64,000 nt of DNA from Rebecca billardiae RCC1528. Its lineage: Eukaryota > Protista > Haptophyta. A program made the position numbers and the translations under genes. The notes beneath the pieces are model-generated. The model was not told where the DNA came from. It was given only the letters and a program-made list of their open reading frames with translations, and searched no databases. The DNA is taken from contig OZ251234.1 of assembly GCA_965240325.2 (NCBI GenBank), forward strand, positions 1,736,001-1,800,000. Direction: 5' to 3'. Positions 4,902 to 64,000 of the stretch are shown piece after piece; positions within the stretch are counted from its first letter, which is position 1, and the number at the start of each line of letters is the position of its first letter.

Positions 4902-5090
4902 TCCGGGACCCGTCGTCAAGTTGAAAGTCCACGTGGAACTACCGGATCAAAGGTCCTTTGATCAAAGCATGGCCGAAATGGCGAATCAAAACGCGCCTGC
5001 CATACGAGCAAATAATTGACGCGCGCAAAGCCGTCGGCCACGCGGCCTGCGTCATCAACGCTGCGCGCGACGCGTCGCGCCCTCGCGAGC

Positions 5091-55142: not shown

Positions 55143-56501
55143 TCAAGCACTGTCAGCATTGGCGAGCTCCGGTGGCGGCTCAGCCAAAGAGTTCTCCGAG
55201 GACGGCCAGGCTGACCTGGCATAGCCGCCGCCGGGGAGCAGCAGCTCGATGGAGAGCGGGAAGTGGTCGGAGAGCAGCTGCGTCCGAGGCGTCCGCAGGA
55301 CCTCCGCCGCACAGCGCGGCGGTGACTTGGCCGGCGCGCCCCGCAGACTCATTGGGCGTGGCGCCGACGCAGCGTCGTCCGCCACATCGGACGGCGCCGC
55401 GGCCGAGCCGATCGCGGCCGCGCGCGCGCACTCGGCTCCGATCACGCCATCGCCCACGAGGCAGTAGTCCAGCCGCATCGGCGCGAAGTGCATCTGGTCT
55501 GCGTTCAGCTGCGTCGGCACGGTGTGGCGCGCGCCGCGTGCCTCGGCGCCCAGATCGCGGAGCCCGCTCGCCAGCAGGGTGCGCATCGGGGCGTAGTCGA
55601 TGCGGGCCGCGCCCCCGCGGGGGGACGCCGTGAACTTCTTGAGCAGCTGCGCGCGCCGTGGCCCGGACCCGATGCGCCCGAGCAGCCCGGACGCCACGTG
55701 CTCGCGCTCGTCGAGCGGCGAGAGCGTGTTCAGGTCCCCCAGCAGGACAAACGGCCGGCCGCGTGCCGCGGCGGCGCTGGCACGCTCGGCGATGCGCTCC
55801 GCCTCGCGCGCGCGCTGCGCCGTGGAGTGCGGGTCGAGGTGTGTCACGCACACCTCGAGGCCGGTACTCAGGTGCCGCGCGCACAGCAGCCCGTGCGCAA
55901 ACGGCGCCGCCCGCTCCTGCGCCACCGCCTCCAGCGGCTCTCGCGAGAGCAGGCCCAGATGATATCTCGACTTTGCGAGCAGAAGCGCATGCGGCATATT
56001 TACGCGCGCGCCGAGCGCGCGGAGCGCGGCCGCGTCGATGCCGTTGAGCTCGTTGAGGGAGACCAGGTCGTACGCGCCGTCGCGTATCAGCATCTCAATC
56101 TCGTCCAGCCGCCTGCGCCTCGTGGCTGCGCCGCCGCCGCCGTGCGGCGCGGCTTGGACCCAGCTCACCGCGCCATCGAGGATGTTGTAATGCAGCGCGC
56201 GCACGCGGCGGGGGCCGGAACGGCGGAGGGCGCGGGGAAAGCCAGATGCGTTCGCCACGGGGCCATCTGCCGCGGCGCCGCGCTCGGTGAAGCGGGCCGA
56301 GGGAGTCTGCGCGTCGTCGCCGAGCGGCACCAGCAACGGGCGCTGGTCCCCGCCCACGCGCACGGCCACCTGCGTGGCGTTGAGCAGGTTCATGCCGACG
56401 GTGATGCTGGCGATCGAGCTGAAGCGCGAGGCGCAGAGAGCGGCCGACGCGGCGCACGCGACAGCCACCAGGGTCCACATGAGCGTCATGTGCGTGCGCA
56501 T
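55143..56501 (-). CDS. Endonuclease/exonuclease/phosphatase (EEP) family protein with signal peptide
   Basis: HYNI, DLVSLNE, VTHLDP, LLGDLN, RLDY and SDHFP catalytic motifs, plus a hydrophobic N-terminus. Confidence 0.88.
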   Translation of the reverse strand: MRTHMTLMWTLVAVACAASAALCASRFSSIASITVGMNLLNATQVAVRVGGDQRPLLVPLGDDAQTPSARFTERGAAADGPVANASGFPRALRRSGPRRVRALHYNILDGAVSWVQAAPHGGGGAATRRRRLDEIEMLIRDGAYDLVSLNELNGIDAAALRALGARVNMPHALLLAKSRYHLGLLSREPLEAVAQERAAPFAHGLLCARHLSTGLEVCVTHLDPHSTAQRAREAERIAERASAAAARGRPFVLLGDLNTLSPLDEREHVASGLLGRIGSGPRRAQLLKKFTASPRGGAARIDYAPMRTLLASGLRDLGAEARGARHTVPTQLNADQMHFAPMRLDYCLVGDGVIGAECARAAAIGSAAAPSDVADDAASAPRPMSLRGAPAKSPPRCAAEVLRTPRTQLLSDHFPLSIELLLPGGGYARSAWPSSENSLAEPPPELANADSA

Positions 56502-56652
56502 CACTTGCGGTCGGCCATCGTGAGGACGGCTGCTCTCGGCTGCTCATGACTCATGAGCAGCCGCGCGTCCGGGTGGGTGTCCGGGGTGGGGGGTTGCGCT
56601 GTCCACCGCTGGACCGGCCGGGCGCGAGTCGCGAAAGGTCAAAGGTCGCGTC

Positions 56653-59600
56653 ATGCGCGTCGACGACACGGATGCCAGTGGCGCCGTCGATGCCACGGCG
56701 CACTCGCGGAAGCTGCTCGTCTTCAACGCGACGGGTTCGGTGAAGACGTCGTCGTATGTTTTCTCGATCCCACTCCACGACACGGAGCTCGGCGCCCACG
56801 CCACGCGGCTTGGTCACGACCTCGCTTGCCTGCTCTATGTCTCTCACGGACGCGTCGATGGGCTGCCCAGGTCCGTCCAAGAGCGCCTGCCCAATGCGGT
56901 GGTCCTCCTCGAGCTGCCGAGGCAGACGGATGGTGCCAACCTCCTCGCGCACGTGCTGAGAGCAGCGCAAAAGCTTCAGGAACGCGGTGCCATCGCGTGC
57001 CTCGTGCCGCGCAATGACGCCGTGCGCAAGCTCACACGTCACGACGACGTGGACATGACGACGCCCGGGATCCCGATCCTCGGCATTTGGCCGAGCCTTC
57101 ACAACCGGCTCTTGACTGACCTGCGGTCGCGGCAGCAAGATCTGCGCGTGCGCGTTGCTCTCCCCGGCGAGGACATCGAGCTGGGCACGAGCGCGGACGC
57201 GTCCGTCCCCGAGCCGAGCCGCGGCGGCTGGCTCGGCGCGGCGTATCGAGGTATCAAGGTCGCCGTGCTCCATACGATCTTGCGCGGCCCCCCGCCGCCG
57301 TGGGTCCGCCTCAGGGACGCGCTCCTCCTTCCCGACGGCCGCCTGCACGATGACGCGACCGCTGAGCAGGCGGACGAGCGCTTTCAGAACGCTGTGCGCA
57401 CACTCGAGGAGTGCATCGTGCAGAAGAACGCGTCGGCCGACGAGGTCGCGAGCGAGATCGCGCGCACGTGCGAGCTGCTGCTTGGCGCGGTACGCGCCGC
57501 TCGGCCTGACGTCGCCCGCGATCTCCGCCTTCTCGCGCTCGCTGCGCAGATCAGCTCGGCGTGGTCAGGTCACCGCGAGGCGACCGCGAGGGCTGCCGAG
57601 GCGCTCGTCGATGGCTGTCTCCGCCGCGCATCGTCTGCCGATGACTGGGTGCGGACAGTCATCCAACCCATGACATTCATCCTGCACTCCGCCGCCTTCT
57701 GGCCGCTGGTCTATGTCTTACACGACCGATGGCTCGGCGGCGGCGCAGATGCGCGCGCGGCGCGTGCGGCCGAGCTCGTCGTGGCCGCGCACATTGCTGC
57801 GGCTTTGATGGCCCGGGAGCGGCCGGATGACGCGCACGAGGCAGCGGCTGCGCTCCCAGACGTCGATTCCATCGCGAGTTGGGGCTGGCGCAACCCCGTC
57901 TCGGGCGCGGCAGCACGCCACTGGGAGGTGCTCCTCCACACGTCGCGCGAGCACCTGCCGCATGCGCATGCGCTCGAGCTCGAGCTCAGCGCGCCGCAGC
58001 GCCTGCGCACGTTCGTCGGGATGCCGGAGAAGCTGCTCGCCGCTGCGGAGCACGAGGGCGGCGCGCACGCGACAGGCCGTGTTGGCAAGCGGCTCCTCGA
58101 CCATCTGGCCGCGCTGGATGGCGCCGAGCAGCCCCTCTCTGCCGATGTGCTCCGCGGCGCTCTCGCCCTCGCCCGCCGCGTGGCCGTGCACCCGCGCGAC
58201 GCGATCGGCGCCATCCTGAGCACTCGGAGCGCGCTGCACGACAACGCTCTCGCGCTGCTCGGCGAGGCGCGCGGCTGGTCGGCGGCAGACGGCCTGGACG
58301 GCCACTGGCGGCAGACGCTGCTCATGGAGGTCATCCAACACTTCCCTGCGCCGCCGCCAAGGGGAGTCCCGTCGGCGCCGCCGCCACGCGGGGCGCGCGC
58401 GCCGTCCATCGGCCGCCAGCACGATCCGCACAGCATGGCGCCCGCCGCACCGCCCGCCGAGCTCGTGCACGAGGTGCTTGAGCTCGCGGAGGGCATGCCC
58501 TTCGGAGGGCCGACGCGTGCGAGGCTCGGCGAGTGGGCGAGCGGCGCGACGACCGCCATCGCGTCGGCGTCGGCGACGGCGCCGTGCGCGGAGCGCGCGC
58601 TGGCGGTCGGGCTCATCTTCCGGCTGCGCGCCGCGCTGGAGTCTTCTGGCTCGAGCAACGTCGAGCTGCCCGGCTCGAACGCGTTGGAGCTCGTCGGGAA
58701 GCAGCTCGCCGTCCTCGTGCGCGGCGCGCCGGCCGGACCCGCGACCGCGACGACCGCCGTGGCCGAGCTCCTCCTGATCCTCGCCCAGCTGCCCTCGGCA
58801 CTCGTCGGCTCGATCCCGCCTCGCGTCGGCGCAACGGTGGCACGGGCGATGGCGGAGTCGATGCGGCCGCGTCCGTGCGCCGAGGTCTTCGCGGCGCTCA
58901 CGGCGCGGCGCAGCTGGGAGAGCGAGGCGCGCGAGGCGGCAGCCGCCCTCGAGCCTCTCGCGCGCACGCTGCGCACCGCGCACGGCGCTGGCGTGGGCGC
59001 GACCACGACGGCGGACGGGCTGCAGCAGAGCATCTCGCGCGATCTCGCCCGCGAGATTGGTCTCGCCAACGAGCTGGGCGCGCGCTCTGGTGCTGACGGC
59101 GCGCTGCTGCGCGAGTGCGCTGCCGTGCTCGAGAGGTGCACGCGCGAGGCAGTCACGCCGCCGCAGGCGCCGTTCGACCTCCGCGCCTTCGCCCACGGCG
59201 TCGTGCGCGCTCACTGCGAGCAACGCTGGTGGCCGCGCGACCTGCCTCAGCTGCTGCGCGCGGGCGGGCAGGCGCTCGCGCAGCCGCTGCTGAAGATCGC
59301 GCGTGTCGACCCGGACTGCTGCCCGGACCAGGCCTCCTTCCTGCTGCAGATGGGCAGCTCGTGGGCCAGCGGCTTCGAGGACGACTCGCACAGCCTCCTC
59401 GCGCTCGACGAGGTGCTCCTCGACGGCGCCAGCGCGCGACTCGACTCGCTGCGCACGTGCGACGGCCTGGCGGAGCTGCCGTCCGCGGCTCGCGTGCTCG
59501 AGCGCATCGCTGCCGCGCGCGCGCGCGCAGACGAGCTGGCGGCGGCGTGCTGCCTGCCTCCGCCGGCGGAGGCGGTGGCGATCAAGACGGCCCTGGACAA

Positions 59601-62600
59601 GTACGCATCCTGCGCGACCACGTCCATCGACCGGCTTCTGCAGCGCTACACGCGCGGCGGCGAGGCCGAGGAGAGCGGCGCCGGCAGCGCGGTCGAACAC
59701 GCAGGCGCGCACGCGCACGGCGCAGCCGGCGCTGCGGCCGGTGCTCGCGCCGGCGAGGCCGACGGACGGCAGCAGGACGGCTGGCGCGGTCGGCCGCTCG
59801 CGTGCATGGAGGAGGACTACACCACGCTCCATCTGTGGAAGCAGGACCTCCACGAGCCGCTGGCCGACTTGGCCTTCTTCACGCACCGGCCGAGCGCGCT
59901 CTTCGAAGCGAAGCTCGAGCAGCTGCGTGCCGAGCGCGCGCTGCAGCAGCCGCCGGGGGGCCACGCGGCGGCGGTGTGGACGGACGCGGCGCTGTTCGAG
60001 GCGGTGCGAGAGGCCACCGATCGGCTCGGCCGGCTGCTCGACATCGACAACGCCCTTTTCAGTGACATCATCGACGTCGAGCACCACGTCGGCCTCGCAG
60101 ATGTCGACGACGAGCTCAGGGCCATTGCCGACCGCGCCGCGCGTCGCGCTGGCTCCGCCGACGCTGCGGTGCGGGACAGCGCCAACGCCGCGGCCAACGT
60201 GCGGCGTGCGCTCGGGCTGATCAAGCTGCAGCGCCCGATCCGCGGCCTCGTCACGTGCCTCGGCCAGTTCGACTTCGGCTGCGCGCGCGGCGCGCCGGAC
60301 TCGAGCACGCCCGCCACCGGCACCGCGCGCGCCCCGCCTGGGGACGATGCCGCTGCCGCAGCGCCGGGCTCGGCGTTTGCCCGGCTGCGGAACATCGCCG
60401 AGGTGCTCGCCGACGATCAGGGCATGCGCGCGCGGCGCATGGCCGACTGCCGCGCGCTCGAGGACGAGCTGTGGGCCCTCGTCGGCCGCGGCGCTAACGC
60501 CCAGCCCGCCAGCGACGCTGAGGTGAGTGCGCGCAGCTGTGTGTGGCGCGCCGCGCCTGTGCGGCTGCGAGGCCGGCTCTGGCGCTGTGGTCCGCATGGC
60601 CGTTGCGCAGTTGCGCCGCGCGTGCTGCGCGCCGCTGGCTGCCACCGCGCGCTCGTCCTCGGCGCTCAGCTGCCCCACCCGGCCCCCGCGCGCCCGCGCC
60701 CCTCACACGCTCCGCGCGCGCGCAGCGCGTCGCTGCGCCGGAGGGCCTCGCGGAGGCGCTCAGCCCGATGCTGCAGCTGTTCGCGCGCACGTCTGAATGC
60801 CCGGACGTGTGGCGGCTGGTCGGCGAGCGCGGCTGGCACGGCGACGAGGGCCTGGTGCGCTTCCGCGACCAGTGGAAGGTGACGGAGAGCAACGTGACGG
60901 CGAGCGACCAGTACGAGAAGGCGGTGCTCAGCCAGCTCGACCCCGCCGTCCAATGGGCCGCGTTCCTCCACGAGCGCTCGGAGCGCTCCCTGGGGGCCCT
61001 CTGCGCAGAGGTGCTCGGCGCGCTCGAGCCGGGCGGCGCGCTGAGCGTTGGCCTGGACGCGGGCACGATCCAAACGGCGCTGCACACGGTGCAGACGAAC
61101 GTGCGCACGATCCGCGGCTGGTTCGACCGCAGCCTCGGCGGCACGGGCGCCAAGCTCGACGAGTTCCGCCAGCTGCTCGAGGCGCGCGCAGAGTACGTCA
61201 CTCTGTGCGCCGCGCCGGGCGAGCGCGCGCTCGCGAGCGCGACAGCGCGCGTCGAGCTCGGCGTGCGCAAGGTGGACGAGGGGCGCGTGCTCGGCGCGGC
61301 GGAGCTGGCCGAGCTCGCGCACGCGCTCAGCTTGGTGCAGCACGACTCGAGCGCGCACAACCTGCCCATCGCCGACTTCCTCGACGAGCTCGCCATCCAG
61401 CGCAAGGGCGCGGAGCTCGTCGAGCAGCTCGCAGCGATCGGCTGCCCTCCGTACGACCGCGCGGCCGAGCACGCGCTCGGCGCCGTGCTCGGCGGGCGCG
61501 CGGGCGCGGAGCGGAGCACGGGCGCGCTCGCGGAGCGCGTGGCCGAGTGGCGCGCCGAGGTGCAGCGCCAGCGGCTCAGGAACCCCATGCTGTGGCTGCT
61601 CTCCGATGCCGACGCCCGCCGGCTGAGCAGCGATCTCGAGGGCGATCTCGGCGCGCAGACGCAGACCATCGCGCGCGCGCTCTCTCGGCTCGTGCGCGCA
61701 CCCATGGCCGACGTGGCGCGCGCGGTCTACGGCGCGCGGCAAAAGACGCTCGCGACGGCGAAGGAGGGCGCAGCTCTCTCGTGGATACAGCGCGCGGGCA
61801 TCTTCATCACGACGTGGAAGAGCCTGCTCGGCAGCCCGCCACTGCCGACGCGGCCGCCTCTCGAGGGCGCGCGGCCGCCCGCCCCGGCAGGGATCACGCT
61901 GCACAGGCTCGATGGCACGCCGCCGAGCGCGCTCCTGCGGCTGCTCGTGCACGTGTGCGCGGGGCGTGTGCCGGAGAGCTTCGAGCTGCTCGCGTGCGAC
62001 GAGCGCACCTCGGCCGCCGACGTCGAGCTGTTCCTCGGCCGCGCGTCGGGCGACGTGTGCGCGGGCAGGCCGTTCATTCTCGCGCGGGCCGACCGCCTGT
62101 CCACCGCGGCGCAGGAGGCCGTGCGCGCCTTCCTGCTCGGCGCTGAGCGCGGCGGCAGCGCGCAGCTGAGCCTGCACATCACCGTGCACGGCCCGTCCTT
62201 CGTGCCGCCCATGCCGTGGATCGGCACCCGCGTGTGGAGCGCGGGCTCTGCGGATGCGAGCGCGCCCGTGTCCGCGTCCGGCGGCGGCGGCTCGCTCCCG
62301 TCGAGCGCGGCGGTCGCGCAGACCGTCCGCGCGGCTGTGACGGCCGACGCTGCCGTCGAGAGCGTCACGGTGGTGTGGTCCGCGTACGCCGGCGCGGGCA
62401 AGACGCACCTCGTGCGCAAGCAGCTCGCGCGCGAGCCCGACGACGCCCGCAAGCTCGTGCTCGGCCTTGACGAGCACTTCTGCGCGGAGGACGTGGCGGA
62501 GGCGCTCGAGCGCGCCGCGCTGCCGGCGGGCTCGACGGTCGTCGTCCAGCTGCACGCCGGCCACTTCGCGGACGCGGCCGAGCTGGACGCGCTGATGGCG

Positions 62601-64000
62601 CGGGTCGACGCGCTGCTCTTCCAGCTCCTCGTGCAGCGCTACGTCTCGGGCGGCGCGCACAAGCGCTCCTTCACGCTCGCGCCCGGCTCGCGCTGGCGCG
62701 TCTGGGTGGAGGTTCCCAGTGCCATCGGCCATCGCGGGCGCGCGCGCGAGCGCCTTGCTCCGGGTGCGCCCGACGAGGAGCGCGTGGCGAGAGAGCAGGC
62801 GACGTGGATGTGTCGCGTGCTGCCCGCGCTCTGCCTCCTGAAGCACCACGAGCTCTCACCGTCCGCGCCGGCGGTGCTTGACCTGGACCCTTCCGTCGAG
62901 CGCGTGTGCAAGTACCTGCGCGCGTACCGCGATGGCACGATCGACCGCAAGTTCGGCGGCGCGGGGAGCGCGCCCGCGAAGCACCTCGCCCTGTGCATCG
63001 ACGTCTCGGGCAGCATGCGTGGCTCCAAGTTCGAGACGGCTCTGCGCGAGCTGCTCCGCCTGTTCGACGAGCACGCCGTGCCGGGCGACCTGATCAGCGC
63101 GCTCAGCTTCGACCACACGCACCACGTGGCTGTCGAGGCGCAGCCGGTCCCAGCGGACGCGGGTGCGCGGACTGGGCTGCGCGCGCAGCTGGCTGGCTTG
63201 CCCTTCCTCAACGGCGGCACGGACATGTACAACGCGCTCGCGCGCGCGGTGCGGTGCTGCGAGAAGCCGGCCGAGTTCACGGGGGAGTCTTGGATCATCT
63301 GCCTCACCGACGGCGAGAGTGCGCCCACGCTCCCGGCCTCCGGGCTTGAGCCCGCCCTCGACCGCAGCACCAACCTGCACCTCGCCGTCATCGGCGTGGC
63401 TCTGCCCGATCGCCTCAGGCCGCACATCGAGTCGCTGTGCGCGCGACCGCCGGGCAGCCGCGGGCGGTATGTCGAGTGCGGGCAGTCCGCGGACGCCATG
63501 TCCACCGCGTTCGGCGCCGTCGCCGCGCTGCTGCCGGTGAGCCAGACCTTCGATCTCGACGGCGAGCTCTCGGACTCGGAGTGCCACGAGCTGCTCGCCG
63601 CGTACATGCCGCCTCACGTGCGCTCGCCCGCGAGCGGCATGCTGCTGCAGCACTTCTGGGTGCGGTACCTGCACCGCCGCGTGCGCGTGTTCGACGCGAA
63701 CGACTTCTTCAACTACAACGAGGAGCACGACGAGCTCGGCAGCACGATCATGCGCATCATGCTCGAGGAGGTGGGCGCGTCGCTGGCGCCCGACCAGGGG
63801 AAGCACTGGGCGGGCGACGTGCACAGGCAGATGATCTACGAGATGACGGAGGACGGCCCCAAGTTCGCGATGCTGTGCACGGCGCCGGACCTTATCGACG
63901 AGGACGAGCACGACACGATCGCGCGGCTCGGCTTCGACCTGCCCTCCGCCGACGACCTGACGGATCGCGCCTGCCTCGAGCGGCTGCTCGCGCGCGCGCT
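56653..64000 (+). CDS. RNF213/mysterin-like giant AAA+ ATPase with an inserted VWA domain, 5' part; exons 56653-60522 and 60726 to beyond the window
   Basis: Intron 60523-60725 joins the 56653 ORF to a frame that stays open to the window end. That frame encodes LLACDERTSAADVELFLGRA, Walker A WSAYAGAGKT (GAGKT at 62391-62405), LLFQLLV..YV, VWVEVP, VCKYL and ECHELL...FWVRYL, collinear with the RNF213 pre-AAA/AAA1 region. VWA motifs are IDVSGSM, GGT and LTDG. Confidence 0.8.

Follow-up and report, generated by a model that had tools for sequence, protein, structure and literature searches.

The window analyzed here, a stretch of 64,000 nucleotides of the haptophyte Rebecca billardiae RCC1528 (contig OZ251234.1, positions 1,736,001 to 1,800,000), is likely to carry at 56653-64000 on the plus strand the 5' part of one giant gene of the RNF213 (mysterin) superfamily, with a VWA domain bearing a complete metal ion-dependent adhesion site (MIDAS) in its second ATPase unit, AAA2, where it would act as a metal-dependent grip on a ligand. 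The kinship with RNF213 is settled by a fold match, by the downstream parts of the orthologues, and by a bridge through relatives in sponges. The first 2,381 codons of the gene lie inside the window, as two exons and one 203-nt intron.

Gene Model and Domain Order

The initial annotation placed the gene at 60726-64000, in a frame missed by the open reading frame (ORF) track. This frame is indeed open on the plus strand, without a stop or frameshift over 3,275 nt to the end of the window, but the gene starts further upstream, with the ATG at 56653. Exon 1 (56653..60522, +; 1,290 codons) encodes a helical N-terminal arm and a linker region, in which a Pfam scan finds no domain. It is followed by a phase 0 intron of 203 nt (60523..60725, +), read from the sequence, with the donor GAG/GTGAGT at 60523 and an acceptor CAG/ whose AG stands at 60724-60725; its removal joins both frames in phase. 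The ORF 56653-60882 (+) is protein-like up to 60522 and degenerate beyond. On contig L001, the ORF that precedes the homologue is collinear with exon 1 (BLASTP E 2e-19), and the two exons are therefore assigned to one gene. Exon 2 (60726..64000, +; 1,091 codons in the window) encodes the last part of the linker, followed by AAA1 and the VWA-bearing AAA2, and runs off the end of the window, so that the rest of the protein lies beyond it, as had been expected. It is 40% identical to the L001 protein over about 680 residues and about 45% identical to the protein of the haptophyte Diacronema lutheri over its length; the latter organism is the nearest named relative for the gene.

Pfam detects both VWA_2 (E 6.9e-9) and VWA in exon 2, above the cut-offs. 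The domain occupies 62964..63539 (+; model residues 328-519), and its MIDAS is complete, with the D-x-S-x-S motif DVSGS at 63000-63014, the Thr of GGT (motif at 63213) at 63219-63221, and the Asp of TDG (motif at 63306) at 63309-63311. In an AlphaFold2 model of window positions 61983-63998, built from the 26-row family alignment A1 (mean predicted local distance difference test score, pLDDT, 83.2), the VWA matches ITIH4 and ITIH1 with Z 22.5 and a root-mean-square deviation of 2.2 Å over 178-180 aligned residues, and more than 600 chains reach Z >= 8 against it (VIA-align). Of the 22 rows of A1 that bear the VWA, 19 keep the D-S-S-T-D pentad; in two others Ser replaces Thr, and the remaining one is a truncated gene model. 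Mean pairwise identity in the VWA (29.4%) is the same as in the large subdomain of AAA2, which marks the VWA as an old, constrained part of the protein.

Judging by the order of predicted elements, the VWA is flanked by the CKYLRAY..IDRKF helix, which is conserved, and by the bundle of helices with which AAA2 is completed; it probably sits where the large and small subdomains meet or immediately beyond. When aligned by hhalign to the profile of a VWA-less clade, the flank preceding the VWA reaches as far as column 359, and the one following it begins at column 367. The flanks are thus only 7 columns apart in the VWA-less sponge clade, while about 196 residues separate the same end points in the window; the VWA is therefore a clean extra domain. 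A sponge query hits each VWA-bearing relative in two separate matches, with some 190-210 residues between them. In mouse RNF213 the two aligned blocks are separated by 266 residues for 225 profile columns, too few residues to accommodate a VWA there. Thus two of the first observations on this gene, namely that a VWA with a complete MIDAS stands between IDRKF and LSDSECHELL and that animal RNF213 lacks it at this place, are both confirmed, the former by Pfam, the model fold and the motif coordinates, the latter for the sponge and mouse proteins.

The other motifs listed initially were all found where they had been reported, and they can be assigned to two ATPase units. The C-terminal half of AAA1 (61983..62180, +) has no P-loop, contains the motif ELLAC..VELFLGRAS (61983-62048), continued by FILARADRLS, and follows the order beta-alpha-beta-alpha-beta in the model. 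Through the VWA-less profile, the ELLAC..VELFLGRAS block aligns to EVLLCT..LLLRRC of mouse RNF213 (6tay residues 1288 onward), at the start of the AAA core; this alignment and the missing P-loop identify it as AAA1. The large subdomain of AAA2 (62304..62960, +) comprises SAYAGAGKT (62379-62405) with the Walker A sequence GAGKT (62391-62405), LFQLLVQRYV (62616-62645), VEV (62706-62714) within the invariant VEVP (62706-62717), VCKYL (62904), and IDRKF (62940-62954). G139 and K140 of its P-loop are invariant in A1, as is the pattern GxGK[T/S], and no acidic pair closes the predicted beta-3 strand, that is, there is no acidic Walker B. No P-loop is present upstream of GAGKT within the aligned block, and the P-loop of the window aligns through the same profile to the RAGVGKS loop of the mouse protein, upstream of the AAA3 Walker A. 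Finally, the helical bundle of the AAA2 small subdomain together with the lead-in to AAA3 (63558..63998, +; model helices 531-600 and hairpin 615-632) contains LSDSECHELL (63567-63596) and FWVRYL (63654) and is cut by the end of the window; in P0153, the orthologue from D. lutheri, about 45 residues lie between the matching point and the AAA3 Walker A.

The host of the VWA was originally taken for the first AAA module. This numbering does not hold in the nomenclature of the mouse structure (PMC7311170): since the preceding unit is AAA1, GAGKT comes without a Walker B, and the AAA3 Walker A is next in P0153, the host is AAA2. Mouse AAA1 has neither Walker A nor Walker B; AAA2 has a proper nucleotide site, devoid of Walker B and sensor I, where ATP is bound without hydrolysis and acts as glue to AAA3; AAA3 and AAA4 are the active units (PMC7311170). 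The algal protein follows the RNF213-type pattern of an AAA1 without Walker A or B and then an AAA2 with Walker A only, and, judging by these motifs, its AAA2 probably binds ATP and does not hydrolyze it. One Glu of AAA2 (62472-62474, in LGLDEHF; model residue 164) does not vary in either clade, with or without the VWA; it comes directly behind the predicted beta-2 strand and does not occupy the Walker B position.

Relationship to RNF213

Simple sequence searches of the Protein Data Bank (PDB) are dominated by the VWA: phmmer with the piece from the window returns VWA proteins only and no RNF213, and a search with the whole-piece profile A1 is swamped by VWA matches. The first of three lines of evidence for the kinship comes from the pre-VWA piece alone, modelled separately (window positions 61983-62969, pLDDT 84.9). 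In Foldseek, RNF213 entries fill the first seven ranks (E 3.9e-7 to 7.7e-6, query TM-score (TMq) 0.45-0.51), and generic AAA+ proteins, including dynein, NorQ and CbbQ, appear from rank 8 onward, starting at E 2.2e-3 after an approximately 1000-fold gap. Thus, among AAA+ proteins, RNF213 is the nearest in fold to the AAA1-AAA2 region, and a structural comparison with RNF213, as suggested in the initial annotation, turned out in favor of the kinship.

The downstream parts of the orthologues point the same way. That of L001 (8799-17099) matches only RNF213 in the PDB (E 1.2e-17), that of D. lutheri P0153 matches it with E 1.6e-40, and in both the alignment to RNF213 runs collinearly through Walker A and B of AAA3 and of AAA4. 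No midasin, dynein or MoxR was returned by these searches at E <= 0.01, and the only other match was one VWA protein. The third line of evidence is A4, the profile of the VWA-less clade, which consists mostly of sponge sequences. It aligns to mouse AAA1-AAA2 with a domain independent E-value (i-E) of 8e-4, over the blocks EVLLCT..LLLRRC, the RAGVGKS loop, FLFKLLILQYL, and VEIP, and also to the mouse AAA3 Walker A (3e-12), with no midasin, dynein or MoxR chain near these scores; the flank profiles of the window, A2 and A3, align in turn to A4 with hhalign E-values of 2.4e-73 and 5.7e-49. The motif collinearity with RNF213 that was noticed at the outset is consequently upheld as kinship, through the sponge bridge and the fold search, whereas the motifs, compared directly with animal RNF213, give no significant match by themselves.

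Distribution and Variable C-Terminal Parts

An exhaustive search yielded 343 cluster representatives at E <= 1e-3 and 128 at E <= 1e-10, with family members in haptophytes, diatoms, chrysophytes, Chrysophaeum and Picozoa. The form with the VWA is carried by D. lutheri (KAG8464087.1, 5,721 aa, automatically named "VWFA domain-containing protein"), by Seminavis robusta (three models automatically named "protein ligase RNF213"), and by Chrysophaeum taylorii, a Picozoa single-cell assembly, and Chlorochromonas danica. The suggested survey of VWA-bearing homologues in protists thus found them in a haptophyte, in stramenopiles, and in Picozoa. Another protein of the family, P0079 (5,306 aa), contains 16 tandem stretches that match query residues ~485-607, the strand-helix region of the AAA2 P-loop, and seems to be an unusual repeat protein assembled from that segment.

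A maximum-likelihood tree was built on the flanks with the VWA columns removed; it is unrooted and leaves out P0005 (a truncated model), P0101, P0111, and short fragments. One branch, with a Shimodaira-Hasegawa-like approximate likelihood ratio test (SH-aLRT) value of 99, parts 20 VWA-bearing from 13 VWA-less rows, and the window groups with Diacronema and L001 (SH-aLRT 98). The VWA is present in every member of one clade, formed by haptophyte, stramenopile and Picozoa sequences, and is absent from the sponge clade. A word search with the sponge protein gave sponge relatives only and no vertebrate RNF213, and for this reason the tree contains no vertebrates and has no root. The description of the VWA as "inserted" therefore stands as far as the extra domain is concerned and fails as to direction, because gain in protists and loss in animals are indistinguishable on an unrooted tree. 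Similarly, the view of the protein as an undescribed algal machine is correct with respect to the literature, where we found no relevant description of RNF213 with a VWA, or in protists, diatoms or unicellular eukaryotes, in a search of partial coverage; it is incorrect with respect to uniqueness, as the proteins are widespread in protists. The novelty lies in how the architecture is read; the proteins themselves are already in public databases under automatic names.

The C-terminal parts bear on the question of ubiquitin ligase activity. The RZ finger is the non-RING active site of RNF213, shared with ZNFX1. The closest orthologues of the gene contain a CPxCGR..EGC..M.CGRD..GCG..W finger resembling the catalytic Rcat of RING-between-RING (RBR) ligases, with a weak match to Pfam IBR_2 (E 0.012); by pattern match it is located at L001:13990-14130, near residue 4704 of P0153, and near residue 4119 of P0005, and the same pattern was not found in the diatom, Picozoa or sponge members. 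The Picozoa orthologue P0035 has a C-terminal WWE domain (residues ~4987-5053, Pfam E 8.7e-9), a domain common in ligases, and some of the sponge relatives have SAM domains; thus the ends of the family vary by lineage.

Genomic Surroundings

Upstream of the giant gene and divergent from it lies a gene for a protein of the endonuclease/exonuclease/phosphatase fold (Exo_endo_phos, Pfam E 5.6e-14; 55143..56501, -; ATG at 56501), the translation of which has a hydrophobic, signal-like N-terminus. The divergent ATGs at 56501 (-) and 56653 (+) are separated by 151 bp (56502-56652), which may be a bidirectional promoter. The head-to-head arrangement at this distance with a signal-peptide hydrolase, reported earlier for the frame from 60726, is thus true for the whole gene, whose ATG at 56653 lies about 4 kb upstream of that position. 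The Exo_endo_phos gene is context and stands outside the ATPase machine.

The window has about 75% G+C, and long spurious ORFs abound in it. Very long antisense ORFs (up to 986 codons), such as 57718-60678 (-) and 60666-62849 (-), face the giant gene; they are Arg/Ala-rich, have no Pfam match, and are by-products of the G+C content. The ORF 57718-60678 (-) was rejected as a gene, as it has no Pfam match and is antisense to a conserved exon.

Alternative Explanations

Several points weigh against the proposed reading of the gene. The window itself contains neither AAA3-6 nor the E3 part, and both are deduced from orthologues. The flank profiles A2 and A3 find, on their own, no RNF213 in the PDB at E <= 10, and the place of the VWA relative to the AAA2 junction is read from predicted element order, with no superposition. 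A Pfam scan finds no RING in P0153, P0007, P0035 or L001 at E <= 0.1, so that an RNF213-type E3 activity is no more than possible. In addition, the intron and transcript structure are predicted from DNA sequence alone, and in DNA so rich in G+C, where an ORF such as 57718-60678 (-) arises without any Pfam match, the open frame might be an artefact or a pseudogene, or the VWA might be a separate gene or be spliced out. We regard this as extremely improbable, for the 3,275 nt are free of stops and frameshifts, the orthologue identity of 40-45% is unbroken across both VWA junctions, and the same layout recurs in more than 20 independent sequences, both genomic and transcript-derived. There is no more probability in the suggestion that the protein belongs not with RNF213 but with another dynein-like family combining AAA and VWA, be it VWA8, midasin, or a MoxR-VWA fusion. 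A feature search of a protein atlas did place it near AAA_5 and VWA8-like clusters, with low scores (0.76-0.77), and the orthologue P0001 shows a faint AAA_5 match. These signals are outweighed by the PDB searches with orthologues, which return RNF213 and none of the other families at E <= 0.01, by the Foldseek ranking, where seven RNF213 entries precede dynein, NorQ and CbbQ by about three orders of magnitude, and by the C-terminal location of the VWA in midasin and VWA8, as opposed to its location inside AAA2 here. A placement with midasin, which had been named as a possible outcome of profile searches, was not obtained, with no midasin chain among the PDB matches, and the whole suggestion is largely refuted.

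Two other alternatives accept the membership in the RNF213 superfamily and concern the history and the work of the VWA. The domain may be ancestral to the whole superfamily and lost on the animal line, in which case it would be a retained part and not an algal insertion. Its presence in at least three distant groups (the haptophyte Diacronema; the stramenopiles Seminavis, Chlorochromonas and Chrysophaeum; Picozoa), the sufficiency of one change on the tree, and a conservation equal to that of the host module all favor this history. Nevertheless, gain and loss are equally parsimonious on the unrooted tree, which lacks vertebrate RNF213, and gene transfer among plastid-bearing lineages could have spread a single gain, so that we consider an ancestral VWA a real possibility that falls somewhat short of an even chance. 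It is rather unlikely that the MIDAS acts within the molecule, binding an acidic loop of the same protein as a latch on the AAA ring, with no capture of a substrate. Such a loop did not emerge from the analysis, and where a VWA domain is fused to an AAA+ protein or works beside one, as in the MoxR-type systems, it usually binds a target. On the other hand, the VWA is inside a ring unit adjoining the catalytic AAA3, the MIDAS of Rea1 docks on its own ring (PMC7311170), and both Rea1 and RNF213 are auto-inhibited by insertions near AAA2, AAA3 and AAA5 (PMC7311170).

Possible Function and Relation to Other AAA Machines

By analogy with integrin I-domains, the partners of MoxR, and Rea1, the MIDAS of the giant protein would bind a divalent cation and hold an acidic side chain of a ligand; capture of an acidic residue by the bound metal ion, whether external or intramolecular, is the most likely mode of action. 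Candidates for this ligand are a substrate or adaptor delivered to the E3 part and a stretch of the same polypeptide. As the VWA seems to hang at the AAA2 junction next to the catalytic AAA3, ligand binding could be coupled to the opening and closing of the ring driven by AAA3 and AAA4, and such a coupling would resemble that of Rea1/midasin, with its MIDAS domain docked on the AAA ring. A substrate clamp and a role in defence, as proposed in the initial annotation, may apply to this protein, and its cellular work could lie in immunity, remodelling or quality control; the sole hint toward defence in this analysis is the occurrence of multiple paralogues in Seminavis and Oscarella. A broader scenario, which at present is quite improbable, would make RNF213 an old pan-eukaryotic AAA machine, the early form of which had a MIDAS VWA in an ATP-glued AAA2 and an RBR-type cysteine finger. 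Animals would then have lost the VWA and changed the active site, and the VWA of protists would be a metal-dependent receptor that recruits to the ligase either a ligand of microbial or viral origin or a marked host protein, controlled by the AAA3/AAA4-driven opening of the ring.

RNF213 has been studied as a vertebrate disease and immunity factor, and it is still open how its AAA ring picks targets and signals to the ligase part. A natural clade with a ligand-binding MIDAS domain in AAA2, beside the catalytic AAA3, offers a handle on the coupling of ring and ligase and represents a convergent parallel to Rea1/midasin. It extends the RNF213 superfamily far beyond animals, to haptophytes, diatoms, chrysophytes and Picozoa, and several of the carrier organisms can be cultured, which makes induction by viruses or bacteria and MIDAS mutants accessible to experiment.

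Animal RNF213 (mouse 6TAX and 7OIK, human 8S24) is, like the algal protein, a giant single chain with a long N-terminal arm, an AAA1 without a P-loop, an AAA2 with Walker A only, and AAA3 and AAA4 with both Walker A and B, the last two seen on the algal side in orthologues only; the AAA1-AAA2 fold matches RNF213 first, and the motif blocks are collinear. It differs in that the algal AAA2 carries a VWA/MIDAS of about 196 residues absent from the mouse protein, in that the sequence similarity over AAA1-2 is detectable only through the sponge profile, and in that the orthologues scanned have no Pfam RING and the closest of them have the RBR Rcat-like finger instead. The RNF213-like proteins of sponges (Corticium candelabrum XP_062500718.1, Oscarella, Oopsacas, Amphimedon) have homologous flanks (the hhalign values given above) with the same P-loop, VEVP, CKYL helix, and RR..FN..GST..ML.EV block, but they are without the VWA and fall on the other side of the single tree branch. 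Rea1/midasin shares with the algal protein a dynein-like ring of six AAA units combined with a MIDAS domain, and it has an AAA2 insertion with a regulatory role (PMC7311170). However, in midasin a long D/E-rich linker leads to a MIDAS domain at the very C-terminus, and the AAA2 insert is a helical element, whereas the algal VWA is internal to AAA2; midasin is absent from the PDB hits and is not a ubiquitin ligase. Finally, in MoxR-type AAA+ proteins with VWA partners (NorQ/NorD, CbbQ/CbbO, RavA/ViaA) and in VWA8, an AAA_5-class ATPase also works with a MIDAS-bearing VWA, and NorQ and CbbQ are weak fold matches to the pre-VWA piece, about 1000-fold weaker than RNF213; in contrast to the algal protein, the VWA of these systems is a separate protein or a C-terminal domain, and their rings are homo-hexamers of single AAA units.

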